Source: Dimorphilus gyrociliatus (taxonomy: Eukaryota; Animalia; Annelida). From it: a stretch of 41,970 nt of DNA. Both the position numbers and the translations under genes were made by a program. The notes under the pieces are model-generated. The model was not told where the DNA came from. It made no database searches and was given only the letters and a program-made list of their open reading frames with translations. This document shows, one piece after another, positions 5,425 through 33,992 of this stretch; the stretch's first letter is position 1, and every line of letters begins with the position of its first letter. Location: contig CAJFCJ010000101.1 of assembly GCA_904063045.1 (NCBI GenBank), positions 1 to 41,970 of the forward strand, given 5' to 3'.

Positions 5425-5522
5425 TTTAACTGAAATAGAGGGAGAATTCTCCTTTTTGATCTTTCCATGAATTAGCTCTTCAAATGTTACTTTCCTTGGG
5501 GGTGTATATTCTTCTAATCTTG

Positions 5523-7946: not shown

Positions 7947-8416
7947 TTCCATATTTCCTCCACAGTAGGCTCTCCATCCAGAGCCAACACCAAATCCTTT
8001 GCAGGACCAGTTAAATAATCTAAAAGATTTGCTTTCACAACATCTTCTCCTATCCAACCATAAGCATAACATGCCTGATTAAAGTCTTCTTTGAATTTTG
8101 AACACTCCTTGCTTCCATCATACAACTTGAGAATAGTTCTTTGAGGGCGGTCCCAAGCAGCCCTTAATGCTTGAATTACTGTTGTGATATCAACATTTGG
8201 GTTCTGTGCTGGGTGATGTGTTCCATCTCCATGATCTGTTGGAATTGTGATTCGATTTCTTTTCATTTCACTCACCAATCTGTCATAGTCTTCAATTAGT
8301 CTTTGTTGCCTTTCTGACATTCCTGCTGGCTGAATTGTAATTGTTGGAGTTGCTGGGGTTGAAGGGTTAGAGTCTGTAACTGCCCCAGTGGCGTTTCCAT
8401 TTCCTTCTTCTGCCAT
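7913..8416 (-). CDS. gag: Gag N-terminus of element 1 (frame break near 7945)
   Basis: First ATG after the PBS (MAEEG). YDGS..FKEDFNQACYAYGW..LLDYLTGPA resembles a retrotransposon capsid domain. No CCHC knuckle seen. Confidence 0.8.
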   Translation of the reverse strand: MAEEGNGNATGAVTDSNPSTPATPTITIQPAGMSERQQRLIEDYDRLVSEMKRNRITIPTDHGDGTHHPAQNPNVDITTVIQALRAAWDRPQRTILKLYDGSKECSKFKEDFNQACYAYGWIGEDVVKANLLDYLTGPAKDLVLALDGEPTVEEIWKAQWNHNCLQL

Positions 8417-8454
8417 ATTTACTTTCTCAAAACTTTTGAATAAACCAAAAGAAT

Positions 8455-8472
8455 ATCCTGTCGACTGCGCCA
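8455..8472 (-). other. Primer binding site, tRNA-Ser type
   Basis: TGGCGCAGTCGACAGGAT, 4 nt after the LTR end. Close to the tRNA-Ser PBS of Drosophila 17.6/297-type elements (TGGCGCAGTCGGTAGGAT). Confidence 0.9.
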
Positions 8473-8476
8473 AATT

Positions 8477-9111
8477 TGTACTGCTCTTGCTGGCAAAATC
8501 TATGCGTTTGCAAGTTATAACAATACTGGTTCTACTCGAACCTTTAAACAAATGTTTAAATTAAAACGGTTTATTCGCAATAATAATACTTAAGCAAGTA
8601 ACAATATGAGAGTTCGATAGCAGAGTAGATAGTTTGTAAAAGCAGGTTGCCAAATTACCAAACTGTCTTCTAATGTTGAGGAGTAGATGGATGGTTCCAG
8701 TGGAGGTTGTTTCCAGATGATTTTCCCAGGTCCTTGGGTCCAGATGGAAGCTGCATGCCAAATGAGAATAATGAGAATTTATATACTTTGAGGTTTGTCT
8801 CTGACATCCAATCATCACTTTACAGTTGCCGAAATGTGTAGTTCATATTTATCTTTAGTAACAGGATGTTACAAGGTTCAACATTTAGGAAGGTTAATTG
8901 AATTATAACTTGGCCACACCCTAGGCAAGTTAATTAAATTATAACTTGGCCAAACCTTTGTTGGTAATTAAAGATGAGCCTTCAAGCTGACTAATCAGAC
9001 TTATGTTTGGCCAATGTTATAGCATTTTCTTGCGTAGGTTTTAAGATGTACATGTATATGTTGCATAAAATAATAGAGTTCAAGCATGTAAAATATAACC
9101 AAAGTTGTACA
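8477..9111 (-). repeat. 5' LTR of element 1 (635 bp)
   Basis: Termini TGTAC..GTACA, TATA-like AGTATATAAA, AATAAA near the 3' end, and a duplicated aattataacttggcca motif in U3. Confidence 0.97.
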
Positions 9112-11091
9112 CCAGTTTGTTAAAATGGGCAAAATGTCTTCATAGTTTAATTGACTAATGTTGATCATAATTCCCGTTGAAGCAATTTTGTATTTGGAGG
9201 CTGATTGTGAAATATTCTTGATGGGAACATCTCTAAATGAACTATCAGAAATAATAAGAAATTCAGTTTTTATTGGTATGTTTGGTGGTAATAATTTTGA
9301 AAAAATTTTAGCTTCTTTGTCTGACAGGAAATTCTTCCCCCATTCTCTATAGAGATCAATCAGCTTTTTATCCTTTCTGTAGTTATTTTTCAATACCATT
9401 CTCCATCCCATATATTTTCTGGTATTATCTGTTATACTTAAAACAATTGAATTTACTCCATCAATACTCTTCTTTGTTGTGTCTATTACTTGATCTTGAG
9501 ATCTTCTCTCTTCCAATGCCAACCATGATTCTTCATCAAACAAATCCAATTCACTAGAATCAATAGAAGTATTAAAAGTTGTTTGTTTTGGTGAGGAGGT
9601 TCTTAATGGTGATTGAAATGAAACATTTTTTGACCAATGTAATTTTGTTACAACAGAATTTTGATTACAAGCATCCATAATTGTCTCATCTAAAATGTTT
9701 CTTACATTTGGGCTTGTTTCCATTATTTGTTCTTGAGCTCCCTCTTCTATCTCTTTTTCATCCATTTCTTCATATTCTTTCAGATTATCATTTTGTTGAG
9801 TAGTTGGTGTAGCAGTTGTATCAGAATGATTATCTCTTAAAATGGTTTCTTGTAATTCTATATTACTTGCATCTTTATTTGGAAAATGGTTATCTTTAAC
9901 TGGCTTATCATTTGCATCCTTGTCAATGACTGTTGTTTTTTCCATTTGCAGATCACTAGCATTTTTCTCTCTTACTGGTACATCTTTCATAATAATATCA
10001 CTTGTATCCTTCTCAATTATAGATGTTTCTTTCAAAATATTTTCTGGTATTTTTTCTATTTCCTTGTCAGTAGTACCTGCTTTCTCTTTTTCAAGTTTTT
10101 CTTCAATTGTTGTTCTATTATCTGTATCTATTTGTTTAACAGCAATCACATGATTTCCAACTTTTTCATCTCTTACAGCTATTTCTTGCAGTTTCTTACC
10201 ACTTGTATCTTTCTCTATTGCAGATGTTTCTTTAAAATTCTTCTCACTTGCAGTTTCTTCAATAACTGATGTTTTTTCCATTTGCAGACAACTGGTATTT
10301 TTCTCTCTTACTGGTATTTCTTTCATTGTAGTTCTATCAGCTGTATCAATATGATTTATAGCTTTTTCATCTCTTATAATTGTTTCTTTCAGTTTCTTAC
10401 CACTTGCATCTTCCTCTATTATAGATGTTTCTTTCATTTTCTCTTCTGGTGTTTTTTCCATTTCATTGTTAAGTGTACCTTTCTCTTGTTCAACTATTAT
10501 TTTCATTGTTGTTCTGTCAGCTGTTCCTATATGATTTCCATCTTTTTCATCTGTTGTAGTTGTTTCTTTCAGTTCCTTCTTTTTTCTGTCTTTATCATTT
10601 TCTTTACTTCTGATACAAATTTCTATCAGACTTTGTTTTGTTTTTTCAACAAATTCCTTGTTCAATTTGATGGATTTTTCTAGAAAGATTTTTGATATCA
10701 ACCTTTTGATTTCATCTTCATTGAAATGTTTACATAATGTACTAATATTATTAAAATAATTTTCCAATAGAACATATTGTTCCAGGTTTTCTAAGTATCG
10801 TTTTTCAATTAAAGCTTGAAATTCTTGATAATCTTTTCTCATTAGCTCTTGAAAAGGTTTAGAAATATTAAACCTATTATTAAAATATAAACATTCAAAT
10901 GAGCTACAGATTTTCTTATATGAAACACCAACATGTTTTTCAATCTGCTTCTCAATAATAAATTTTAATTGTTTATAAATGTCAAAGTTTAAAGTCTTGA
11001 AATTCAACTTAAAACATTCCTTTTTTTCATATATTTCAGGGTAAAACCATGGATGATTCAGTGTTTTTGTTTTCCTTACAGGTTCATTCAT
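9001..11091 (-). CDS. ORF A: unknown protein with helical N-terminus, 15-aa repeat linker and SGNH-like C-terminus, truncated by element 1 at 9112
   Basis: 696-codon ORF. Splice-acceptor-like tttttgttattcctataag just upstream of the ATG. EFLIISDSSF..QLNYEDILPILTNW aligns with ORF B. The last 36 aa are read from the LTR. Confidence 0.75.
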   Translation of the reverse strand: MNEPVRKTKTLNHPWFYPEIYEKKECFKLNFKTLNFDIYKQLKFIIEKQIEKHVGVSYKKICSSFECLYFNNRFNISKPFQELMRKDYQEFQALIEKRYLENLEQYVLLENYFNNISTLCKHFNEDEIKRLISKIFLEKSIKLNKEFVEKTKQSLIEICIRSKENDKDRKKKELKETTTTDEKDGNHIGTADRTTMKIIVEQEKGTLNNEMEKTPEEKMKETSIIEEDASGKKLKETIIRDEKAINHIDTADRTTMKEIPVREKNTSCLQMEKTSVIEETASEKNFKETSAIEKDTSGKKLQEIAVRDEKVGNHVIAVKQIDTDNRTTIEEKLEKEKAGTTDKEIEKIPENILKETSIIEKDTSDIIMKDVPVREKNASDLQMEKTTVIDKDANDKPVKDNHFPNKDASNIELQETILRDNHSDTTATPTTQQNDNLKEYEEMDEKEIEEGAQEQIMETSPNVRNILDETIMDACNQNSVVTKLHWSKNVSFQSPLRTSSPKQTTFNTSIDSSELDLFDEESWLALEERRSQDQVIDTTKKSIDGVNSIVLSITDNTRKYMGWRMVLKNNYRKDKKLIDLYREWGKNFLSDKEAKIFSKLLPPNIPIKTEFLIISDSSFRDVPIKNISQSASKYKIASTGIMINISQLNYEDILPILTNWCTTLVIFYMLELYYFMQHIHVHLKTYARKCYNIGQT
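9832..10569 (-). repeat. Degenerate 45-bp (15-aa) coding repeats in ORF A
   Basis: Units such as KETSIIEEDASGKKL, KEIPVREKNTSCLQM, KETSAIEKDTSGKKL, KDVPVREKNASDLQM. Confidence 0.85.
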
Positions 11092-12522
11092 TTTGAATTG
11101 TAAACTCTCAATTCTTTTCTTATAGGAATAACAAAAAAAAAAAACAAAACATAAATAAGCATCAATAACATACTTAGAAAATCAATAAGTACATAACCTA
11201 ACCCTATATATAGAAATAGATATAGATAATTATATTAATTCTTTTTTTCAAACCTGTTTGTGATATTCTTCCTCAATAAAAATTAGTTAAAATTTTGGAA
11301 GAGATAAAAAAGAGTAACTGTAAATTTAAAAGCAAAAAAAGCCATCTTATTTAGAGTTATTCTGTAAGGAAAAATGTGAAATTCAACAAGAAAGAACTTT
11401 GCATATTTATTGAAATAAAGAACCTAAAAGGTAAACTTTATTTTCATTGGGAATATACAAGTTTTTAGAAAAAATTAAAAAGCTATGTAGAATTTTGTAA
11501 TAAAAAACTTTGTATATTTATTCCATTGGAATGAAGAACTTAAAAAGTAAACTTTTTTCAATGGGAATATACAAGTTTAGAAAATAAATAAAAAAGCTAC
11601 CAAAATAAGGGTTTATATGTATTTTTTTTTATACTAAAAGTAACTTTTTTGAATTTTATAAGAAAGGAGGAATATCTCAATATATTATATCAACACATCA
11701 ACACCAATAACAAATAGTTAAAAAACAGAATAAATTCATAGCCAAGGGCTGTAAATTTATTCAAGAAAGACAAGACTCTTCAATACAAAACATATACTAC
11801 TTACTTTGATAGTAAATTTCAGAAGATTCTTTCAAGATAGCTGTTGTCAGGTTTTGATCCTGTAGAATTTGCAATATGCTGATTAAGACTTTGGTTGGGA
11901 TGCTGTCAGAAGATTTCCAGTCCACAAAGTAGTAGAGATTCAATCAGTAAAAAATTGATTCTGTAATAAATGTAAGTAGAAATTACTAACAATAATTAAT
12001 GAATTTAACAATTATATGCATCTGTTAATTAAAATATTTAAAGAACTGATATTTATTTCAATACACCAAAAAAGTTAAGAAAAACATAAATCTTACTAGA
12101 AATAAAGTCTGGGATGTTGAACTATCCTTCTTCTGTAGTGGAATAGATGAAAGCTATCACACTTTTGGTGAAGAGAAGACCTCTATGTTGAGAAAGATTT
12201 ATTATAACATAATATTTAAAAATAATGTAACATATAACATATAACTAACTGTGTAATCCAAGCAAAATGGAGAAAAAAGCAGCAAATAGCAAATCAATCA
12301 GCAAAAAATTCTCTCTGTGTAAAGAATATAAAATGAATATTATGAAGAAACCATTAACTGAATATAGTAATTAAATTAACACTTCTATTAATTAAATTCT
12401 ATAGTTAAAGAATTAACATTTCTTTCTTTCTTTCTTACATATCGAATATTTGTTTTTGCTTGTAAAATTTTTTTTCATCTAATCGAATAGATTTTTGCAC
12501 AATGTTAACAGGCTTGAAAAGC

Positions 12523-12680
12523 TGATTCTAATGATATATAATATGTCTATATTCCATCAACTGTTTATATGAAAAAAGTTAAGAAAAGATTAGAACTTAC
12601 TTGAAACAGAGACTGGTCTGGTGAACAGTCTTTTCTCTATGGTAGCAGATGAGAGAATGTGCAATAGCAAGGTTTATATA
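12523..12680 (-). promoter_or_regulatory. Putative promoter and non-coding first exon of ORF A
   Basis: TATATAAA (12680-12673), 30 nt, CCATAGAG, GTAAG donor at 12600, then a 32-bp motif (12523-12554) identical to 17011-17042. Confidence 0.55.
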
Positions 12681-13811
12681 CACTTTAGCATAGAAAACCC
12701 CCATCATGGCAACAAAGCCCTTGATAAGACACTATCAAAACATGTCACTTGTCACCTTTTCAGATTATATCATTTAAGATAAGGGCCTTCTTGTGAAGAA
12801 AGTGGCTCTCATAGTGTCACCTCTTAACCTTTGAATTATATTTCATAATGTATAGACAAAATTATATATTATATTTTTCTATTTAAAAAAATAGATTGAA
12901 ATTCATTGACAATATCCAATAATCATTACAACTAATTGAACAGTCTTCATAATTCAATCAATTAATATCTGCTTAATTAATTAATAATTTTATACTATTT
13001 TATATATTTAATTATTTATTAGGATATGGTTAGTTTTCAATACTCTTTTAATAATTTTTTGTTATGGTTAAGGGCTAAAGTTAGGGTTAGGTAGAATATT
13101 GCCCAATTCTAATATTCATTCTCATTGTATAATTGCAACATTGAATTATTATATGAGTATGCATATTGAACAAGGTGCCAATGGAAACAATATAAATATG
13201 TATATATATATAATTTTCTTTAAGCAACATTTTGTATGTAGGTCAATGAAAATCTTAAAAAATTAGTACAAGTACACTGTAAGAATTGGAACAGTAAAAT
13301 TCCATCAATTTCTTTGAAATTCGAAGGAAAACAATATATTAAAGCAATAGTTGTAATACATTTAATTACATCCAGCATATAAACATTTAAAGCAACTATA
13401 AATTCATCCTAAAATAGATGTTCTTCTACCAACTTTTGTATTATGATAGTACTTGCATTTAAGCTATTTAAACAGTATTTAAACTATGTTTTATATTATA
13501 GGAGTTAATTTATTCTAAAAGGAAATAGAATTGTCTACAATTTAAAAAAAAATTTGTCAATTTGGATCAGAATTAAGGATAGACAAGGTGCTTAAATTTG
13601 AACTAATATCTTATTAAAACCTAAAATTGTCAATATCTTAAAATTAACTTTTCTCAGCTTCTATTTGACAGATTTCATTGATTTTTGAAGCAAATTAAAG
13701 ACCACAAAGCGAATTTGTTTATTCTCTGTAAATTTAAGAGCAATAAGTATGCTGTGCATTTAAAAAACATGATCTCTATGAGACAACTACCATATAAAAT
13801 ATACAAGTATA

Positions 13812-15323
13812 TTACAATTCATTACAGAAGTGTTTGAGTAGGAGATGTTGATCTTGTTGACAAAGCTGATTATAGCCACCGTTTTCATTGATTAATCTGC
13901 TCTGTAATGGTTGAGGAAGTGGTATAAAGCTCAATCCAGCTCTCTTCATATTTCTCTGAGTATAAGCTGTAAAATAGTTAGTAGGGAAATATATCTTTTT
14001 GAGTTTGACTGACTGATTGAAGATTTCTCCAGAAGAAATATTAGGTTTATGTTTAGAGAAGAAGAATATTTTTTTAAATGAAAACTTCCATTTCTGGCAT
14101 ATTTCAATTATGTCAACAAATTTCAATTCCCTAATTTGGAAAAACACAACATTTTTGCTGGTTCCCATAGTTGTATCCTTGATCTGGAAGAGTTGTTTCT
14201 CTGACAGTCTATCAAAGGAGCAATCACTTATCAATACACAATCATAATATTCTTTTCTACATTTCATTTTAAGGGATTTATCCAATTTAACATTCTTTAT
14301 CTTTACATATTTAAATTTGTTTAAATCCATAACTTTTTCCTCTTCTTTTCCCTCTGGAAGCTCTTGCTCTTTTTGTTTCTCTTCTTGGTGGCTTTTTTCT
14401 TCTATACCTCCTTCAACTGTAGGCTTCTTTCTCTTGAGTGACTCTTGTTGTTGCTGCTGCTGCTTTGGTTCTTTTGCTTTCTCTTGCTGTGGTGTTGTTC
14501 TTTCAACTCTTTGCTTCTTAGTTTGTGGTTCTTCTCCTTGATTTTCTCTTCCTGAATCTTTCACCTCCTTTACTTTAGGAATCTTTCTCTTTTTAGTTAA
14601 CCTTGGTACAGTTGTTTGTGTGCTTCTTTCTTTGAATGTTTTAGATATTTGAACAGCAATATCATGTGTCTGTGGCTTCTTAACTTGAACAGCAATGTTA
14701 TGTGTTGGTGGCCTATCAACCTGAACAGCAACCTCTTTAATAACTTGTGTATTTTCTATTTGTTTTGGTGGAGATGCTTGATCTATAACTTCGTTTTCCT
14801 TAAATTCTCTATTGCTTTTCTTCATATTGTCATAAAAATTAAGAACATCTTGATAAAATTCATCATAATATGATTTGGAGAAATGCTTCATATTCCTTTT
14901 AGTATTTAAAACTTCTCCATTTACAAAATGTAATACTTTAATTAACTCTTCCTTAGATTCTAAAAGGTTTAACAATCTTTTTAAATAGAAGTATTGATTA
15001 AGTTTCTTTTGCAATTCATAAAAATTTTTGAAGCATCTTTCTACTGTATTTATCAGCTGTTTTTTGCCCTCAAATATATCTTCAAATATGTTATCCTCTT
15101 TATTATCTCTATAATATTCTAATTTATTTTTGCATCCAAGATCTGTTCTCTTAATTTCATTTTCTAAAAGGTGATCCCAATGATTAGCAACTTTACTGTT
15201 TTCTGCTTTGAAATAGCATTGTAGAATGTATCTTAGTTGGAATTTTAAATTGTTAATGTTTACATCAACATCAGGGTGCATATAAGGCAGAGTTTTGAAT
15301 GGCATAAACCATTGTATATTCAT
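13812..15323 (-). CDS. ORF B: paralog of ORF A with AVQ/TQT repeats and an SGNH-like C-terminal domain
   Basis: 503-codon ORF from the ATG at 15323, directly after an acceptor-like ttgtgcAG. DCVLISDCSF..RELKFVDIIEICQKW matches ORF A. Confidence 0.75.
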   Translation of the reverse strand: MNIQWFMPFKTLPYMHPDVDVNINNLKFQLRYILQCYFKAENSKVANHWDHLLENEIKRTDLGCKNKLEYYRDNKEDNIFEDIFEGKKQLINTVERCFKNFYELQKKLNQYFYLKRLLNLLESKEELIKVLHFVNGEVLNTKRNMKHFSKSYYDEFYQDVLNFYDNMKKSNREFKENEVIDQASPPKQIENTQVIKEVAVQVDRPPTHNIAVQVKKPQTHDIAVQISKTFKERSTQTTVPRLTKKRKIPKVKEVKDSGRENQGEEPQTKKQRVERTTPQQEKAKEPKQQQQQQESLKRKKPTVEGGIEEKSHQEEKQKEQELPEGKEEEKVMDLNKFKYVKIKNVKLDKSLKMKCRKEYYDCVLISDCSFDRLSEKQLFQIKDTTMGTSKNVVFFQIRELKFVDIIEICQKWKFSFKKIFFFSKHKPNISSGEIFNQSVKLKKIYFPTNYFTAYTQRNMKRAGLSFIPLPQPLQSRLINENGGYNQLCQQDQHLLLKHFCNEL

Positions 15324-17010
15324 CCTGCACAATAAATATTAAACACTAAATTATTCATTGTAATTATGGCTATTATTTAACAAATATATTAAATCTTTAA
15401 TTTAACTTTTCTCAGCTCCAACTTGACCAATTTTAGCTCTGTTTTGACCTACGTTTAGCCCATTTCAATTCTAAACAGCCTATACAAGAATGAAGATTAA
15501 CAGTTTGGGTTTTCTACCGTAAAAATTCAGTTGAATAATTTACATTTAACAGGACAATGAGCAAAAACTAGACCAGATAGAATGAATCTGATAAAAGATT
15601 AAATTTGGGTTTAATAATATCTCTCTACATTCAAAAAAGCAAGTTTCTAGCTGTAATATTAAAGGAGCTATAGGCCTATTTGTGTACATATCTTATAAAA
15701 TATTTATAGAAAATGATCACAAGTTAACCCAAACTTATCCTAAAAAGATTATTACTAATAAGACTGTTGCCTATCCTATTAATCTATCAAATTTGTAAAC
15801 AATTAATGCATCTCTTTATGTTTGAACTATTATTAAATACATTATTTTGAGTCCTATTTATCAAAATTGAAAAATTAATTTTTCTCAGCTATTACCTAAC
15901 AGATTTTAAGTCTGTTTAAACCTACATTTAGCTTATTTAATTCTACATTTATATATTTAACAACTATGTTAAAATATTGTGATTTTCCATGTCAAAAATT
16001 AAATATTTGACAGAATTTTTACCAGCCTACAGCTCACAGATTAACAACTTGATATAAATTTGATATTAATTATTTAATTTAAGAGCAAAGACTTTTTCCT
16101 ATACACAAGGAAATACTACCTTGTAATACCTACTATTTAAACATCTTTACATATTTTTGATTAAAAAAGTTAATTTTTTAAAGAAAGAGACTTTACATAA
16201 GTTAACTCTGCCTAATCTTCTTCTTAAATTAGTGTATTACCTAATATCCATGAAAAGAAATATGTCAAATCTTAATGTTTTCTATGCAAAAAGTGACTTA
16301 AAAAAAAAAATTTTAACAGCAAATAACAGAAAAACTACAAATGATAAATTATTTTCATTAACTGATTTGAATTTGGCATAGTCTACTCTCCTTATGTTAA
16401 GAAAATCAAGTTTCTATTATGTAAATTAAAGAAACTATGGTGGAAAAACCAAAAACTTATTTAGTTTAAGCCTACCTTATAAAAGCAAAAGCAAATGATG
16501 CTATTCCTACTTCTAATAAGATAACTGTTTCTCTGTTAATAGAAACATTGCTCAAAATTAGATTACTATAAATAAGAGCATTTTCTTTCCTAAAAAACCA
16601 GGTAAATTCAGATTCAAAAGAAAAGGAATTAACCAGAAAACCTGACATAAAACACATTTGGTCAATTCAGAACAAAGTTCAAGGAATAGACCAAAATTCA
16701 CAATAGATATCTTACTTTGAATTAGATATGAATGTTGGGTTTGGAAAGAGAAGAGAAGAGAAGGCAGTGATGGGTTGGTGAAGAATCTCTTGAGAAGGCT
16801 ACTTTAGTAAGGCAACTGTGAAAGGTCAACTGTGGTAAGGCAACAGGTAAAAGGCAACTGGTTGCAATTGAAATATCTGTAAAAAAGTTGGAAAATATTG
16901 TTAAATAGAGTGGAAAAAATAGCAAAAATTTGTCATTTAGCGTTTATGTGTAAAATATTTTTTCGTCCAATTCCTTCACTGATTGCTTGAGGTTAATGGG
17001 CGTAAAAAGA

Positions 17011-25458: not shown

Positions 25459-26271
25459 TGTACACTACATTCGTCAGCTATATTCTACAATAGAGAAGTA
25501 GTATTGAACCAGTATTGTACTATGCAGATAGCACTGATAAAGATAAGCAGTAGTGACCTAGTTTCGCATAGGGCAGTGCATACACATTATGCAGTAATAA
25601 AACCTATTGAATTATATAAAGAATATTTGCTATTTGCAACCTAGCATTAATATTACAATTTATTAATCCATAAATTTATGATTTTGAACTAAAACTAGTT
25701 CAATTAATTATCAATTATGCTTAAATTCTAAGTTTAGATTATATTCACTATTCAACAGTATTGTATACACAATACTGTTCTTTTTAACATGCATTAATCA
25801 GATATACTTCCTCCTTATATGCTGATGCTAAATTTACTAACTCAATCAATTGAATATCATTATTAAGGTAGAATATAAAGACAGTCAAATATACAATCTA
25901 CATGTTTTCTTGATTGTTGGACTTGTGCTACTAAAATTGTTACATCTTATGCAACTCTCCAACCTTCGAAATTCAACTATTATTTAGAAGAGGAAAACAA
26001 TAAAAACATGACCATATTTAGAACTTTTCTTTGTCTTCAAATGTTACTTTTGTTTTTGTGAACATGGAAATTTGTCAACTATCAACCCTTAAAAGAGTAT
26101 ATAAACCCTACGAAATTAACAGTTGATAGTTCAGTTTTCTAACTGTCAGCTAGTTGTTTAAACTAGCTTGTTTAGAACTAGAAGCTCATTTTACTCAATA
26201 CATATTCTTTGGACGAAATACTGGTGTTTTCTTAATCAATTTCTACCAAAATTGCCTTTGTTAGACTATTT
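25459..26271 (+). repeat. Truncated 5' LTR of element 2 (last 121 bp, PBS and gag start deleted)
   Basis: Matches 33062-33871, then jumps into mid-gag sequence. No PBS follows. Confidence 0.95.
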
Positions 26272-26694
26272 AAAGGAAAAATTGTTAATCATGTGGAAAA
26301 AGATGGAAAGATTAACTCAGTTAATCAGTATATTAAATTGGCAAAAAGAGCAGAAATATTTTTTGATAATGCAAGAAAAGAAAGCGAAAATGAATTCAAA
26401 CAGTACAAAAGGAGATTTGACAACAATCAGAGTAACTCAAATCAAAATGAACATACATTTAAACCTTTTTCTCAAAATAGATTTCAACAACAAAGAAATG
26501 GAAATGCAGGAAATAATGAAAAAGGCAGCTTTAACAGACTAATACATGTTGGACCTGATGAACCTAATGAAACTGAAATTTCTAAAGGAAGAATGGCAAT
26601 ATTTAATCTCAAAGAAGAGAAAATCGCACATTTTAAGTGTACTTCTTTGGTAAAAGGCAGAAAAGATTTTGCAATTTCGAATGAAAAATCATAA
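26272..26694 (+). pseudogene. gag: Gag C-terminal remnant of element 2
   Basis: IVNHVEKDGKINSVNQYIKLAKRAE parallels element 1 ILHLVYTLHPKCQTLAELYEAAKQAE. It is followed by an N/Q-rich stretch with no CCHC knuckle. Confidence 0.65.
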
Positions 26695-27778
26695 TGGAAG
26701 AGAGGTTATTGCTTTATGTGATTCAGGAGCACTTTTGTCATTTATTACAGAAAAAGAAATCAGGTTAATGGATTCTAAATTCATCAAGAAAGAAACTACT
26801 GGCTTACCAATCATCACTTCAGCAGAGGGAAATGCTTTAAAGACAAAAGGAAAAACAAAACTGAATATTCAATTTAATGGAAGAATTATGGAACAAGAAT
26901 TCTTTATTATGGAAAAACTAGATATGGCTATAATACTTGGTTGTGATTTCTTAGAAAATGCTGGAGCTCTTATTGATTTTGCAACAAAACAAGTTTCTCT
27001 TCCATTCTTTATCAGAAAAGGACAACCAGTTAGAAAGTTTTTGCAATATAACGAAAATCACCAAACAAAATTTGGAAAACAAGGCAGTGTAAAAAAAGTA
27101 ACTGTTGGAATGATGGGACAGTATTTTGAAGATTCTGACACTCCATCTGAAGTTTTTGATACTCCATCTGAAGTTTCAGATAGTGTGGACTCAGAAATGG
27201 AAGTTACTGATCCAGATACTGGCTATGATACAAGCAACACTCATGGTTCAAGCATAGTTTATGAGGGATTCAATGGTTTTGATTCAAATAGCAATTATGG
27301 CACAGATGAAAGTTCCAGTACTTCTGAAAATTATGATACAGAAACAAGTATTGAATCAGATCACAGCCCAGACTCAGATTTGGATATAATCAATGGTACA
27401 AGCTCATCTGAAGATGAAATTAGTGATTCAACTGATTCTGATCATGGTTCAATGATTGTTATAGACTCATCTGAGGAAGAGCTTGATAACATAACTGAGC
27501 CTGATAATGATTCAATGATTGTTATAGACTCATCTGAAGAAGAGACCAGTAACACAATTGAGTCTGACAATGATTCCATAACGGTTATAGACTCATCTGA
27601 TGAAGAGACTGGAAATATACCTAAGTCTGACAATGACTCAGTTATTCTCATAAATTCCTCTGAAGAAGAAACTGAAGACTTGGCTATGGAAATGGAAATG
27701 AAACCACAATATAGAATTAGAAGATGGAATAACTATCAAAGTGGAAAAAGAACAAAAGAAAAATCCAGTAACACCTGA
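26669..27778 (+). CDS. pol: Aspartic protease plus acidic repeat block of element 2
   Basis: ALCDSGA..IILGCDFL. Frame breaks near 26670 and 27712 are both read through in frame in the element 1 homologue (DFQFR; PQYIELEDGITI). Confidence 0.9.
   Translation: MQFRMKNHNGREVIALCDSGALLSFITEKEIRLMDSKFIKKETTGLPIITSAEGNALKTKGKTKLNIQFNGRIMEQEFFIMEKLDMAIILGCDFLENAGALIDFATKQVSLPFFIRKGQPVRKFLQYNENHQTKFGKQGSVKKVTVGMMGQYFEDSDTPSEVFDTPSEVSDSVDSEMEVTDPDTGYDTSNTHGSSIVYEGFNGFDSNSNYGTDESSSTSENYDTETSIESDHSPDSDLDIINGTSSSEDEISDSTDSDHGSMIVIDSSEEELDNITEPDNDSMIVIDSSEEETSNTIESDNDSITVIDSSDEETGNIPKSDNDSVILINSSEEETEDLAMEMEMKPQYRIRRWNNYQSGKRTKEKSSNT
27449..27672 (+). repeat. 63-bp tandem repeat (3.5 copies) encoding (M/I/V)(I/T)(V/L)I(D/N)SS(E/D)EE units
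   Basis: Units start at 27449, 27512, 27575 and 27638. A separate 21-bp duplication (DTPSEV) lies at 27137-27176. Confidence 0.95.
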
Positions 27779-30700
27779 AATAGAAGAATTACAGTTGGAA
27801 AGTATTGAATTTGAACATTTGTCTAATCAAAATGTACACAATATTAATTCAAATACACTAGAAATTGACAATTATTTACATGTGTCCAAAAATAATCTTG
27901 ACAAGAACAGAGAAGAATTAAAAGAAATGATGAAGAATTATGAAGATATTATTGCTACAAATCAGAATGACATTGGTTCACCAGATGTTCCACCAATGGC
28001 AATTGAATTATTGGAAGATATAAAGCCTTTCAAACAAAGACCATACAGATTGCCACCCAACAAACAGCAGGAATGCAGGGATCAATTAAATGGATTATTG
28101 GAAAATGGTCTAATTAGAGCAAGCAAAAGCCAATGGGCTTCACCCATTGTTTTTGTGAAAAAGAAAGAAGGAACATTAAGAATGTGTGTGGATTACAGAA
28201 AACTTAACAAGCAATCAAAAAAGAATTGTTATCCAATTCCACATCAGGAAGATTTATTTGATAAGCTTGGAGGAGGCCACAAATATTTTTCTATATTGGA
28301 TTTAACAAGTGCATTTCATCATATTCCAATTAAAGAAGAAGATAAGGAGAAAACTGCTTTTATTACACCATTTGGTTTATTTGAATTCAACCGCATGCCA
28401 TTTGGTTTGGCTAATGCACCTTCACACTTCAGCTATATCATGGCAAATTTTGTTATTAATGGATTGGAAAACTTCTGCATTAATTATATGGATGATATTA
28501 TAGTTTTTACCAAAACATTGGAAGAACACTTTGTAGCTCTACAGAAACTTATGGAAAGAATCAAGGAAAAAGACTTCAGAATTAAACTGAGCAAATGTGC
28601 ATTCTTACAAGAATCAGTTCAATTCCTTGGTCATAGAATTACACAGAATGGTATTGAAACTGATCCTGAAAAGATTCAGAAAATAAAAGATGCCAAATTA
28701 CCTATGTTTGCAAATACTCTGTTGAGTTTTGTGGCATTTTGTGGTTATTATAGAAGATTTGTTAAAGATTTTGCAAAAATCACAAAACCTTTGAGAGAAT
28801 TATTAAAAGTACACCAAAAGACAGAAAAACTGAAATGGACAAAAAAAGCAGAGGAAGCTTATGAAACACTAAGGAATGCAATGACAGAGCCCCCAATCCT
28901 TCAACTGCCAGACTTTACTAAATCATTCTATTTAACAACAGATGCTTCTAATTATGCAGTTGGTGCAGTTCTAGAACAAGAATGGGAAGAAGATGGAAAG
29001 AAAATAAGAAAACCAATTTCTTTTGCTTCCAAGCTCCTAATCAATACACAACTAAGATATGCAGCTTATCAAAAAGAGGCTTTTGCAGTATATTGGGCAG
29101 TACAAAAATTCTCCCATTATCTACAGTATAAGAAATTTTTTCTCTACACTGATCACCAAAATTTGGTACAAACATTTGTACAAAACAAACTGAATACAAG
29201 TACTGTTAAAAGGGTGATGGCACTTATGGATATGGATTTTGAAATAATATACATACCAGGAAGAACTAATAGAGCAGACTGGATATCAAGAATTGGTGAA
29301 ACTGATGAAGTAATTGATTTTCGTAATTTACTTAAGGAAAGATTAAATGAAGAAAAACAAAATGGCAATACAGTTCCCCAATTAGCAGAAAGAAAGGATA
29401 TGCTTAAATGCTTTTATATTGATACAGAGGACTTAGAAGAATTAGATGATTGTTTAGATGACAATCTAGACAATGATTATGATGAAGACATAACTGAAAT
29501 CCAAGCCCAGATTATGAAACTAAAAATCACACCAGTTGAAATAAACTTCTATAGAGAACAAGTATTAGATACTCCACTAATGAAAGTTGTAGACAAATTG
29601 GAAGGAGAAAACATTGATAATGGGTCTTTGAATGAATATGGAAACTTTATTGAATCTATGTTTGTAAAAGAAGACCTTGAATGGTATCTAAATGGCTGTC
29701 AACCACTACTTGTAATTCCACTATCAACTCTAACAAACTTACTTGGACAAATTCATCAACATCAACTATTTGAGCACTATGGTGTAGACATAACAATTCA
29801 CACTTTGGAGCAAGCTTTCTGGCACCCAAAGCTAAAGAAAACAATTAAAGATCACATAAAGAGTTGTGAATTTTGTGAGCAATTAAGAGCACCAGGCAAC
29901 AAACATCTGTTGGTTGAAACACCTCACCCAACTTTACCAATGCAAAGAATAGCTATGGACATAATGGGACCTCTGACTGGACATGATTCTTACAAGTATA
30001 TACTTGTCATTATAGACCACATGTCCAGATTTACCAACATATTCCCTCTAAAAACTCAAACAGCTGAGGAAATTTCTAAACATTTGTTTTTCAACTATTT
30101 CCCAATATTTGGTATCCCAGAAGAAATTCTCACAGATCAAGGAAGGAATTTTCTTGGGGAAATCTTTACAGAAATGGTGACATCAATGGGAATACGAAAA
30201 ATTAAAACAACAGCATTCCATAGCCAAAGTAATGGAATGGTAGAAAGAAAGAATTTGGAAATTTGTAGAGCACTACATAAACATGTAGTTATGGAACAAT
30301 TAACAGATTGGACAAGACAGTTACCATTAATTCAGACATGTTTAAATCAAATTCCAGTTGGAAGCACTGGCAAAACCCCACATGAAATATTATTTGGATT
30401 GAAGAATAGAAATGTTTTAGACCTGTTAATGGAAGTTCCAAGATTAGAACCAACAACAAAATTCTTATTTGATAGAAAACATGAACTTGAAGAAATTAGA
30501 GCAACAGCACTTTGCAAATCTGTTCTAAAAAAGAAGGAATATAGAGATAGAGTTAATAAAGCTATTACAAGAAAACCTCCAACTTACAAAATTGGTGATT
30601 GGGTACACAAAAGAAATGAAAACATTGGTCAAGGAATGAACAGAATAAATACAAGCAAATGGAGTGGACCATATCTTGTAACTGCTACAGATACTACAAA

Positions 30701-32303
30701 ATGTTTGTATAAATTACAAATATTGGCAGATAAAAGAAAATTCTACCATGCTAGTAGACTAAGACTAACTAACAAACAAGCTATAACAGTTAACACAGTG
30801 ACAGTAAGGAAACACCAAACAAATGGTGTAATGCTGCCTATCAGAGGATCAATAATTTATACACTGTTAGCAATATGCTGTTTAAACTTGGTCCAAGCAA
30901 ATGTATCCATAACAAAAGCAAACATAACTGTAAGAATGCTACCATCAGTACAGTTTTGTCAAGGACAACAAGTACACCAATCATTTGATTTAGCAGATGA
31001 ACCAGTATGTACCTTTGAAACTAAACAAATGATCAAAATTGTAGCTAACATCTATGAAATTAAAGCTGACAATTTGGCAATTCAAGCTGTCAAGTGTTTA
31101 GTGAAAAGAAGAATCAATTTCTACACTCATTACTTTTTTGGTGCAAAGAAACACAGAATTGAAAAACAAACACTTGCCTTAAGTGAAAAACAATGCAGAA
31201 CAATGCTATACACACACAAAACCTTAAATGGACAAAACCTAATTGAAAAAGGCAAACTTCTTATGTATAATGAAAACAAAGGACCAAATTACAAATGGCC
31301 AAGAACCACAGTGGTGGAAGAATTTACAACAATCCTTCAAATTGGCAAGGCTTATTGGAATCCAAGTCAAGATAAAATAACCACAAATTTGGAATATTTA
31401 GAAGACTGTTCTATTAAACAAAAATTTTGTAGAACTTTGGATTCAATCATTATATTTAATCCAGAAAAAGGCCAAAGTCTTCTAGGCCATGTTTCACCAT
31501 GGAAAATAGTTTCCCATAATGTGGAATGTCTAAAACTTGGAGGATATTTTTCCTGCCCCAACTATGCAATAATGGATTTACCTTACCAAGACAGATATAT
31601 CAAAGGATATGGTGGTCCTGGTACCAGAGTATTGGTACCCCAGAAAGAATATGACTTACTTAGAACTGATCTTACAAATTCTAATTATGCTGACAATAAA
31701 ATAATAGAGGATACAAAATACAAGATCATTTCAAATAAAGAAGTTAATAGATTGGAGAAATATATTGGAAAGAAATCATCACTAAGAAAGGCCAATGTCA
31801 CAGAAATACAAGATATTTTAACATATAATGATTGGTATAGAGATGGTGACAAAACCTACCATATGCTGATAAAAAATCATGCAACACCATTAGTGAGGAC
31901 TTGGTTTGTCAAAGAAATTATTTCTCCAGACATCTGGGATATTCACAACAAATACATACTAAAAATGCTGAAAACAACAAAGCTAAAACCTGCCAGACTA
32001 GTAAGATCACAAGATTTTGAATTGGACAAAAAACCAGTTACTTTCAACCCACTCCCAAACATGAACATTTGGTATCAAAGCCCAAAAGATACACAATTTC
32101 AAATTCATACAGAAAATGGCAAATATACACTTTTACAAAGAAAACCAATAAATCACAAATGGAAGAGGAAACAATTAGAAAACATAGAGATTCCAGAATC
32201 ACACCAAATAAATATAAAAGATGCTATAAGAACAGCTGCACTACTAAACAATATTGACAAAAATTTTCAAAATTTACAAACAGTTTTTAAACAAGTTTCA
32301 TAA
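27741..32303 (+). CDS. pol: RT, RNase H, integrase, signal peptide and env ectodomain of element 2 in one frame
   Basis: RMCVDYRKLN, YMDDII, TTDAS, H..H..CEFC, MDIMGP/TDQG/VERKN, then MLPIRGSIIYTLLAICCLNLVQA and Cys-containing env. Confidence 0.95.
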   Translation: MEKEQKKNPVTPEIEELQLESIEFEHLSNQNVHNINSNTLEIDNYLHVSKNNLDKNREELKEMMKNYEDIIATNQNDIGSPDVPPMAIELLEDIKPFKQRPYRLPPNKQQECRDQLNGLLENGLIRASKSQWASPIVFVKKKEGTLRMCVDYRKLNKQSKKNCYPIPHQEDLFDKLGGGHKYFSILDLTSAFHHIPIKEEDKEKTAFITPFGLFEFNRMPFGLANAPSHFSYIMANFVINGLENFCINYMDDIIVFTKTLEEHFVALQKLMERIKEKDFRIKLSKCAFLQESVQFLGHRITQNGIETDPEKIQKIKDAKLPMFANTLLSFVAFCGYYRRFVKDFAKITKPLRELLKVHQKTEKLKWTKKAEEAYETLRNAMTEPPILQLPDFTKSFYLTTDASNYAVGAVLEQEWEEDGKKIRKPISFASKLLINTQLRYAAYQKEAFAVYWAVQKFSHYLQYKKFFLYTDHQNLVQTFVQNKLNTSTVKRVMALMDMDFEIIYIPGRTNRADWISRIGETDEVIDFRNLLKERLNEEKQNGNTVPQLAERKDMLKCFYIDTEDLEELDDCLDDNLDNDYDEDITEIQAQIMKLKITPVEINFYREQVLDTPLMKVVDKLEGENIDNGSLNEYGNFIESMFVKEDLEWYLNGCQPLLVIPLSTLTNLLGQIHQHQLFEHYGVDITIHTLEQAFWHPKLKKTIKDHIKSCEFCEQLRAPGNKHLLVETPHPTLPMQRIAMDIMGPLTGHDSYKYILVIIDHMSRFTNIFPLKTQTAEEISKHLFFNYFPIFGIPEEILTDQGRNFLGEIFTEMVTSMGIRKIKTTAFHSQSNGMVERKNLEICRALHKHVVMEQLTDWTRQLPLIQTCLNQIPVGSTGKTPHEILFGLKNRNVLDLLMEVPRLEPTTKFLFDRKHELEEIRATALCKSVLKKKEYRDRVNKAITRKPPTYKIGDWVHKRNENIGQGMNRINTSKWSGPYLVTATDTTKCLYKLQILADKRKFYHASRLRLTNKQAITVNTVTVRKHQTNGVMLPIRGSIIYTLLAICCLNLVQANVSITKANITVRMLPSVQFCQGQQVHQSFDLADEPVCTFETKQMIKIVANIYEIKADNLAIQAVKCLVKRRINFYTHYFFGAKKHRIEKQTLALSEKQCRTMLYTHKTLNGQNLIEKGKLLMYNENKGPNYKWPRTTVVEEFTTILQIGKAYWNPSQDKITTNLEYLEDCSIKQKFCRTLDSIIIFNPEKGQSLLGHVSPWKIVSHNVECLKLGGYFSCPNYAIMDLPYQDRYIKGYGGPGTRVLVPQKEYDLLRTDLTNSNYADNKIIEDTKYKIISNKEVNRLEKYIGKKSSLRKANVTEIQDILTYNDWYRDGDKTYHMLIKNHATPLVRTWFVKEIISPDIWDIHNKYILKMLKTTKLKPARLVRSQDFELDKKPVTFNPLPNMNIWYQSPKDTQFQIHTENGKYTLLQRKPINHKWKRKQLENIEIPESHQINIKDAIRTAALLNNIDKNFQNLQTVFKQVS

Positions 32304-32873
32304 CTTTTATGCAAAGAATTTATCATGAGAAACAAGATGATAGCCCTACTTACACCACTATCACCTCAACTACCAACAATACTTGGATATGGTACATGTG
32401 ACCAAACTCAGCATCTCTTCAAGATCAAGAAAAATCCTTTGGATGCAGAACAAAATCAATATGCCATACATTCTGGCAAGAAGACATTTATCTATTATAC
32501 AAGGAAAGGATGCAGGTTCCAAACAGCAGCAGCACAATCAATCAGAATGAAAATCAACAGTCAAATTGAAGAACCAAAACTAGAAGTTGTCAGACTCACA
32601 GAATTATTACAACTAGGTATAAAAGAAGATGTGGGCAAGAAACATTATCAGATACAACAAGTTTTGGAATACATACAGGATACTTTGACTAAGCATAGAG
32701 AGCATATTAACTTTGCAAATGATTTAGGAATTGATGCAGCCTTGTCACCAACACAACATCTATTTTCTTCATGGATAAGAAAACCTTTCAAAATACTAAT
32801 AGACACACTTCTGCCAATTATACTCTTGATTGGAATTGGATTCTTCATCTACTTTATTGGAAGAAAAAACTGA
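32304..32873 (+). CDS. env: Env C-terminus with TM helix, same frame as the upstream ORF after an in-frame TAA
   Basis: LLCKEFIMRNKMIALL aligns with element 1 LLCNQFVQRSRMMALL. TM helix LLPIILLIGIGFFIYFIG followed by RKN. Confidence 0.85.
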   Translation, partial: LLCKEFIMRNKMIALLTPLSPQLPTILGYGTCDQTQHLFKIKKNPLDAEQNQYAIHSGKKTFIYYTRKGCRFQTAAAQSIRMKINSQIEEPKLEVVRLTELLQLGIKEDVGKKHYQIQQVLEYIQDTLTKHREHINFANDLGIDAALSPTQHLFSSWIRKPFKILIDTLLPIILLIGIGFFIYFIGRKN

Positions 32874-33045
32874 AAAGAGTTCAATTTACCAGACTGTCTA
32901 AACTACTGACAAAAACAAAAAGATTACCTTCAGCTCCAACAGCCTGAATCAGAAGAAATAGAACTGCAAAATTATCCTATGTTCAGAAAAAGTGGTGATA
33001 ACATAATTGTCACAAGTCCTAGACCTTTCGTGGAAGCAAGGTCTT

Positions 33046-33057
33046 AAAGGAGTGGGA
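33046..33057 (+). other. Polypurine tract of element 2
   Basis: AAAGGAGTGGGA, 4 nt before the 3' LTR. Confidence 0.85.
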
Positions 33058-33061
33058 TGTT

Positions 33062-33992
33062 TGTACACATACATTCGTCAGCTATATTCTACAATAGAGA
33101 AGTAGTATTGAAACCAGCATTTACTATGCAGATAGCACTGATAAATAAGCAGTAGTGACCTAGTTTCGCATAGGCAGTGCATACACATTATGCAGTAATA
33201 AAAACCTATTGAATTATATAAAGAATATTTGCTATTTGCAACCTAGCAATAATATTACAATTTATTAATCCATAAATTTATGATTTCGAACTAAAACTAG
33301 TTCAATTAATTATCAATTATGCTTAAATTCTAAGTTTAGATTATATTCACTATTCAACAGTATTGTATACACAATACTTTCTTTTTAACATGCATTAATC
33401 AGATATACTCCTCCTTATATGCTGATGCTAAATTTACTAACTCAATCAATTGAATATCATTATTAAGGTAGAATATAAAAACGGTCAAATATACAATCTA
33501 CATGTTTTCTTGATTGTTGGACTTGTGCTACTAAAATTGTTACATCTTATGCAACTCTCCAACCTTCGAAATTCAACTATTATTTAGAAGAGGAAAACAA
33601 TAAAAACATGACCATATTTACAACTTTTCTTTGTCTTCAAATGTTACTTTTGTTTTTGTGAACATTGAAATTTGTGAACTATCAACCCTTAAAAGAGTAT
33701 ATAAACCCTATGAAATTAACAGTTGATAGTTCAGTTTTCTAAATATCAGCTAGTTGTGTAAACTAGCTTGTTTAGAACTAGAAGCTCATTTTACTCAATA
33801 CATATTCTTTGGACGAAATACTGGTGTTTTGTTAATCAATTTCTACCGAAATTGCCTTTGTTAGACTATTTGTGGATGAACTTTAAAGGTTCTATTTGAA
33901 CCAGTACTTTGGCAAGTTGGTAAATGATTGGAAAGGACGATTACAGTTGTGATGAACCAGAAATTCCTACAATTACAATACAACAAAGTACA
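33062..33992 (+). repeat. 3' LTR of element 2 (931 bp)
   Basis: TGTAC..GTACA termini, GAGTATATAAACCC TATA-like motif, followed by the TSD. Confidence 0.97.

Follow-up and report, generated by a model that had tools for sequence, protein, structure and literature searches.

A conserved, repeatedly amplified short phospho-SIM-like motif in the protease tail of Dingle retroelements of the annelid Dimorphilus gyrociliatus

In this study, we analysed a 41,970-nt window of the Dimorphilus gyrociliatus genome (assembly GCA_904063045.1, contig CAJFCJ010000101.1, positions 1 to 41,970 of the forward strand), a stretch of AT-rich DNA (29.7% GC) that holds two long terminal repeat (LTR) retroelements, here called element 1 and element 2. 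Both are assigned to Dingle, the name given to the dominant Ty3/gypsy family of this species (Martin-Duran et al. 2021, PMC7854359, in the passages on Dingle). In each element an acidic tail that follows a retropepsin, PR2, carries a short linear motif that is real, conserved and repeatedly amplified, and that, judged by its sequence, would fall in the phospho-SIM class of SUMO-interacting motifs (SIMs). The motif consists of Ser, four aliphatic residues, Asp or Asn, Ser-Ser and three acidic residues, and the repetitive stretch is a lineage-specific tandem amplification, from one to four copies, of this one conserved unit. Our best reading of the tail, which we put forward tentatively, is a multivalent SUMO-binding module; this reading and the alternatives weighed below are not mutually exclusive. 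Subfamily comparisons throughout draw on about 70 short genomic loci.

The motif is most regular in element 2, where PR2, the only protease of that family, and its tail are encoded in one plus-strand open reading frame (ORF; 26669-27778). The tail itself spans 205 aa (27098-27712), from a VTVGMMGQ anchor to a conserved PQY junction, matches no Pfam family, and is acidic and rich in Ser and Thr (59 D+E, 59 S+T and only 2 K+R), with 24 CK2-type S/T-x-x-D/E sites. From this composition (29% D+E, 29% S+T, 1% K+R) and the lack of a domain match, the tail is probably disordered. Within it lie four 21-aa units (27449-27670, plus strand), which read SMIVIDSSEEE (27449), SMIVIDSSEEE (27512), SITVIDSSDEE (27575) and SVILINSSEEE (27638) in the translation of 26669-27778. 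The initial annotation, made from the letters alone, had reported these four repeats at 21-aa spacing; translation bears out both the sequences and the exact spacing, and Tandem Repeats Finder returns a period of 63 with 4.2 copies and 76% matches (27403-27669). A degenerate fifth unit, LDIINGTSSSEDE, precedes the four (27380-27418, plus strand) and occurs in the element 2, L027 and L069 types. In each of the four units the hydrophobic core of four residues is followed by D/N-S-S-E/D-E-E, and both flanking serines stand in S-x-x-E, the CK2 consensus.

A strict form of this pattern (four hydrophobics, then D/N/E/S, two of D/E/S/T, and D/E) occurs three times in the element 2-family tail, where 20,000 composition-preserving shuffles give an expectation of 0.003; this excess of about 1000-fold is inflated by tandem duplication. 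Because they are tandem duplicates, the copies of an array are not independent, and we give the shuffle statistics minor weight only; conservation of the motif across subfamilies is the stronger evidence. The strict pattern had no occurrence in 149 retropepsin relatives (70,243 residues).

Element 1, on the minus strand (LTRs at approximately 1-570 and 8539-9111), bears a homologous tail of 168 aa (3106-3609, minus strand, by translation; 49 D+E, 4 K+R). Its repetitive part comprises two 17-aa units (3295-3345 and 3244-3294), each encoding SIIIE-x-EIIDITHSDNE, followed by SLIVVDSSQDE (3211-3243) and SVIFLDETK (3154-3180), all on the minus strand. Tandem Repeats Finder finds here a 51-bp unit with 2.1 copies and 94% matches (3242-3350), and since the two 17-aa units differ at only 3 of 51 nt, this is a recent duplicate. 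The initial annotation had described the 17-aa unit with EIIDIT twice, LIVVDSSQDE and VIFLDE as an independent expansion. The sequences hold, as does a lineage-specific amplification, but the unit is not of separate origin: in our alignment of tails (A1), it matches the 21-aa unit of element 2 save for one 4-residue gap. The further proposal that two unrelated units had converged on one motif class is rejected for the same reason, that the 17-aa and 21-aa units are homologous. Indeed, the two tails are homologous along their length, sharing S-D-S-x-D-S-E-M-E-V-T, DTGYDTSNT and a closing QYIELEDG junction.

How well do these units fit the SIM class? In a SIM the hydrophobic core spans four residues, of which three or more are usually V, L or I, and acidic or phosphorylatable residues stand on one side of it, C-terminal of the core in parallel SIMs (PMC12751080). 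The Dingle units agree with this definition, as the initial annotation had proposed, and by core plus acidic or phosphorylatable flank they are parallel, like those of PML, PIAS and Daxx (PMC12751080). Cores of four hydrophobics with at least three V, I or L recur as MIVI, MIVI, IMVI and VILI in element 2, as VIVI, VIII and IIII(N) in other subfamilies, and as LIVV, VIFL, IIDI and III(E) in element 1. The D/N-S-S-E/D-E-E flank follows every element 2 core; a few of the units in element 1 (IIIE-S-E, VIFLDETK) have a weaker flank. Serines that flank SIMs are typical CK2 targets, and their phosphorylation brings a roughly tenfold gain in affinity (PMC12751080). We propose that a Dingle unit most likely acts as a parallel-type, CK2-phosphorylatable SIM: its aliphatic core would dock in the groove of host SUMO as an added beta strand, its phosphoserine and acidic flank would contact the basic patch of SUMO, and amplified arrays would add avidity toward multiply SUMOylated or poly-SUMOylated host proteins.

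A candidate host partner is encoded in the genome. The host SUMO genes are one SUMO2/3-like and one SUMO1-like, and a SUMO exon of the assembly is 98% identical to D. gyrociliatus DgyrCDS13296. Positions in the groove of the annotated 86-aa host SUMO (P0002) were numbered by reference to human SUMO1, using what we take to be its numbering. P0002 keeps the groove residues H-F-K-I-K...T..L.K-L, with numbering compared also with that in PMC12751080. At its N-terminus, M-G-E-K-T-E-N, the candidate position for a chain-forming lysine is a K-x-E that lacks a preceding hydrophobic residue. As a separate observation, the search for the SUMO/ubiquitin-fold family also returned a host gene for polyubiquitin, in which 228-bp units follow one another head to tail at least six times (G000:C20:854272-855624).

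The initial annotation had suggested modelling the repeat with host SUMO, and we folded P0002 in three runs with a 33-aa peptide that has unit 2 at its centre. The interface score (ipSAE) was 0.39, 0.39 and 0.38 against 0.02 for the best control; the runs agreed in at least 71% of contacts, with partner pLDDT (predicted local distance difference test) of at least 50. The pair thus passed the mark, which 51 of 78 solved complexes attain, as do 2 of 108 mismatched pairs, although for this single unit the verdict was 'weak support' and nothing stronger. We take the fold to raise slightly the odds that the unit would bind SUMO.

Several observations weigh against a SUMO-binding module. SIMs are loose motifs, for which false positives are common (PMC12751080). 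Among the 78 solved complexes only 5 passed with a score of 0.60 or below, as did all 4 passing mismatches; the calibration of the fold covers neither peptides nor disordered chains, and the model may have learnt known SIM-SUMO complexes in training. An AlphaFold2 (AF2) model of PR2 plus tail, built on a 5-row alignment, was uninformative, with a mean pLDDT of 35, a pTM (predicted template modelling score) of 0.22, values below 52 throughout, and poor values for the protease domain too. In single copies, which may be dead, a core residue is changed radically: Ile gives way to Lys in L014, L015 and L026 and to Thr in several element 1 copies, and the copy in the window has Thr for Met. Lastly, several intact subfamilies have a single unit, so that whatever function is conserved cannot be avidity for poly-SUMO. 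Within the element 2 clade, L027, L030, L061 and L066 have 1 unit, L069, L025 and L028 have 2, and the count elsewhere reaches 4. The initial annotation had seen in the tandem array a poly-SUMO reader, and as a general property of the tail this does not survive the survey, in which four units mark the element 2 family, two L069, and one L027, L030, L061 and L066. What every intact subfamily keeps is at least one unit.

The freedom of unit number lends itself to another explanation, in which the tail is a loosely constrained acidic spacer whose repeats arose by replication slippage or unequal recombination and bind nothing specific, with cores persisting through recent ancestry and AT-rich codon usage. 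Besides the range of 1 to 4 units, this explanation draws on tail length (104-215 aa among copies), on a variant tail 168 nt shorter among the contigs of one public run (contig kind not stated; copy variants only there), on the radical core substitutions in some copies, and on the lack of homologues outside this genome in the searches as made. An exhaustive HMMER search returned 156 hits, all to the protease only, and no relative of the tail outside the genome, a blank that is weak for low-complexity sequence; the feature-level Atlas search for the tail likewise gave no usable match, and a low-complexity blank of that kind means little. The junction domain between protease and reverse transcriptase (RT) of Ty3 is reportedly dispensable. 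That Ty3 has such a PR-RT junction domain (PMC11381356) speaks for a spacer by analogy. Also in its favour is L067, with a 51-aa tail that has no core, but the protease of L067 is itself broken. Loss of the hydrophobic cores from a still acidic spacer, which the initial annotation had named as telling against SUMO binding, was seen among the copies surveyed only in this truncated copy; otherwise the cores are conserved while their surroundings drift.

Patterns of divergence argue against a mere spacer, which we consider unlikely. The dN/dS ratio (nonsynonymous to synonymous substitution rates) of the tail is below 1 in all eight pairwise comparisons (0.32-0.57; protease domain, 0.15-0.30), and the tail is under purifying selection. 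Between elements 1 and 2 it is about as conserved as RT-RNase H (54% and 56% identity, respectively), and above integrase (44%) and the env N-terminus (40%). Within one array, core and acidic flank of units 1-3 differ at 1-3 of 30 nt and linkers at 10-11 of 33 nt (Fisher p 0.003-0.06), that is, with 3-10 times less divergence. Since the units of one array are equal in age, age alone cannot give this contrast, which reflects selection or patterned conversion. Two blocks of the tail point to function as well. DTGYDTSNT (27215-27241, plus strand, in element 2; 3499-3525 in element 1) is invariant in all aligned tails (columns 182-190 of A1), and the preceding S-D-S-x-D-S-E/D-M-E/D-V/I-T is nearly so; in the unit adjacent to the QYIELEDG junction, D-N-x-S-V-I is invariant in A1, across subfamilies whose tails are 54-76% identical. 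DTGYDTSNT and the block before it are better conserved than the SIM-like units themselves, and a second invariant motif implies that the tail hosts more than one function.

Such a second function leads to an account in which the units are some other CK2-dependent short motif, for instance for acidic-cluster sorting or chaperone binding, or self-associating strands that pair with one another or with the protease to regulate dimerisation. The invariant second motif and the 24 CK2-type sites of the tail suit this account, as do the five cores drawn as strands in the AF2 model, at the highest, though poor, pLDDT of the chain. That model is unreliable by the values given above, no search suggested an alternative partner, and no aromatic residue is there to make a LIR-type (LC3-interacting region) motif. 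Nor can the element 1 tail, which precedes the env signal peptide, be the cytoplasmic tail that sorts env. We regard this group of explanations as quite improbable. Specific readings as a LIR, an HP1-binding motif or a sorting signal were set aside, given no aromatic residue, no PxVxL and the position upstream of the env signal peptide.

The arrangement of the tail relative to the protease brings in a further alternative. A tail of approximately 170-210 aa always comes after PR2, whether PR2 precedes RT, as in the element 2 type, or sits between integrase and env, as in the element 1 type. Element 1 carries two retropepsins (window 2602-8551, minus strand): PR1 upstream of RT, and PR2 between integrase and the env signal peptide. 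The second (3610-3999, minus strand; Pfam RVP_2, 6.2e-07, residues 490-586 of ORF 2602-5424) is 64% identical to the only protease of element 2 (26669-27097, plus strand; catalytic LCDSGA at 26714-26731; Pfam RVP_2, 4.6e-05, and RVP, 2e-04, residues 9-111). The initial annotation had placed the acidic block next to the retroelement protease. This is so in both elements, but in element 1 the protease concerned is the second one, after the integrase, and not that of the PR-RT segment. Because PR2 and tail lie between integrase and env in element 1, the acidic tail travels with PR2 and not with RT. Homology between the two elements starts in the gag-end/PR leader and stops about 15 aa past the QY junction, as would result from insertion of a gag-end-PR-tail cassette into element 1, and the identities of PR2 (64%), RT (56%) and integrase (44%) between the two families are compatible with a later capture of PR2.

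A tail that always accompanies PR2, and whose closing junction both architectures conserve, would also be expected if the cores were retropepsin processing sites in a flexible acidic linker, by which PR2 frees itself from the downstream RT in element 2 or from the env precursor in element 1, with extra units as redundant sites. In support of this, the best-conserved unit is the one nearest the domain boundary, and PR1 of element 1 is joined to RT by a short, non-acidic link, which implies that the tail is not an RT requirement. The variants SVIL-IN, SVIF-LD and SVIL-LD resemble what we take to be the hydrophobic P2-P1/P1' pattern of retroviral sites, as at HIV-1 sites, and we count this for processing. 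On the other side, many cores (VIII, IIII, MIVI) are wholly beta-branched, which characterised retropepsins disfavour at P1, the conserved D-S-S-E-E-E flank is more than cleavage requires, and the invariant P-Q-Y / I-E-L-E junction is the better candidate for a cut. Overall, processing seems to us an improbable role for the cores.

If the tail does bind SUMO, its constant association with PR2 admits a more far-reaching scheme, in which PR2 and the SIM-bearing tail would form a SUMO-targeted aspartic protease, guided to SUMOylated host chromatin or silencing factors, which it would cleave or to which it would tether the element; element 1 would have kept its ordinary protease for processing and captured PR2-tail as an accessory. 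It would be a retroelement counterpart of the SUMO-targeted ubiquitin ligases or of modifier-guided proteases of the Wss1/Ddi1 type. We think this very improbable. Under the broader reading as a SUMO-binding module, we infer SUMO binding, phosphorylation and some downstream role, for example in anchoring the element at SUMO-rich chromatin or in disturbing silencing that depends on SUMO; a role in counter-silencing or integration tethering in particular would be pure inference.

The remaining features of the two elements are those of Dingle. Element 2 (25599-33708, plus strand) is bounded by LTRs at 25599-26108 and 33201-33708, detected as direct repeats D1/D9, which are 97-98% identical at a spacing of 7600. 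The module closes, in both element types, with the conserved junction MKPQY / IELEDGITIKVE (27698-27760, plus strand). Directly past the junction, element 2-type copies read I-K-V-E (27736-27747), which is the classical hydrophobic-K-x-E consensus for SUMOylation; R replaces K there in element 1, so that this consensus is not conserved. RT, RNase H, integrase and an env-like region follow in a single frame (27741-32303, plus strand; translation, with Pfam RVT_1, RT_RNaseH, Integrase_H2C2 and rve). Pfam thus matched gypsy-type RT, RNase H and integrase; the env-like ORFs had no Pfam match, and their likeness to herpesvirus gB rests on PMC7854359. The passages on Dingle in that paper treat the phylogeny of pol and env, and mention neither an acidic repeat tail nor a second protease; they also describe Dingle copies as clustered in islands of closed chromatin.

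In the element 2 family the env-like region comes after the integrase in the same frame, with no stop (27741-32303; loci L002-L005), and env may be part of the polyprotein or the product of an unseen spliced RNA. Intact copies have gag, PR, tail, RT, RNase H, integrase and env in one open frame of up to 2075 aa. The window's own copy of element 2 is defective: it has a shorter gag than copies in which approximately 410 aa precede the protease motif, it is frameshifted near 27710-27722, at the junction, relative to other copies, and its third core is ITVI where all other copies have IMVI. In element 1 a hydrophobic segment resembling an env signal peptide lies about 30 aa past the tail junction (2950-3015, minus strand, by translation). 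The element 1 module is present in more than 25 genomic copies that are 97-100% identical, some with open frames of up to 1824 aa, and both families are high-copy and recently active.

Among the matches listed in a word-based search, the sole protein match to the tail-RT junction was D. gyrociliatus DgyrCDS14407 (P0001), 85% identical over the junction. This gene model looks like a chimera in which host exons are fused to pieces of Dingle, with an unrelated N-terminal region joined to the last tail unit, RT and integrase; another, P0066, looks like a chimera of this sort as well, combining a protease fragment with an unrelated C-terminal region. Between the two elements, on the minus strand (window 9001-15332), lie two long ORFs of 696 and 506 aa with internal repeats spaced at 201 bp.

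Compared with known systems, the Dingle units are closest to the phosphoSIMs of PML, PIAS1 and Daxx (Stehmeier and Muller 2009, as cited in PMC12751080), with which they share an aliphatic core, then Ser amid Asp and Glu, S-x-x-E CK2 sites and a low-complexity setting. They differ in that the Dingle motif stands in a retroelement polyprotein, joined to an aspartic protease, and is known here from sequence and a weak in-silico pass. Several SIM or SIM-like units also occur in the SUMO-targeted ubiquitin ligases RNF4 and RNF111/Arkadia and in the viral proteins HSV ICP0 and HCMV IE2, and the Dingle units likewise follow one another across short acidic linkers (15 residues). A tandem arrangement of SIMs raises affinity for SUMO chains, according to the relevant passages of PMC3631770 and PMC3678163. 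Unlike RNF4 and Arkadia, Dingle has no RING or other ubiquitin-ligase domain, its linked enzyme is a retropepsin, and its array of 1-4 units is not conserved. The junction (J) domain of Ty3 is a non-enzymatic segment between PR and RT (PMC11381356). The element 2-type tail lies between PR and RT in the same way, whereas the element 1 tail lies between PR2 and env, so that the likeness to J is one of position in the first type. For J itself, the tail's positional parallel, this comparison stops at location. We know of no SIM-like motifs reported for it.

In animals, SUMO has a central part in forming heterochromatin and in silencing transposons, and it is engaged by SIMs that DNA viruses carry. 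Our literature search returned no report of SIMs in LTR retrotransposon polyproteins, nor any earlier case of such a polyprotein with a conserved, repeatedly amplified motif of SIM type. To test for binding, peptides and the 86-aa SUMO of the host suffice, and the element need not be revived. Should the motif not bind SUMO, the tail would still show clearly that a retroelement linker can harbour a conserved linear motif under selection. Should it do so, Dingle, which is recently active and the dominant transposon in this 78-Mb annelid genome, would make a simple system for studying whether a retroelement uses host SUMO conjugates to target its integration or to blunt the silencing imposed by its host.

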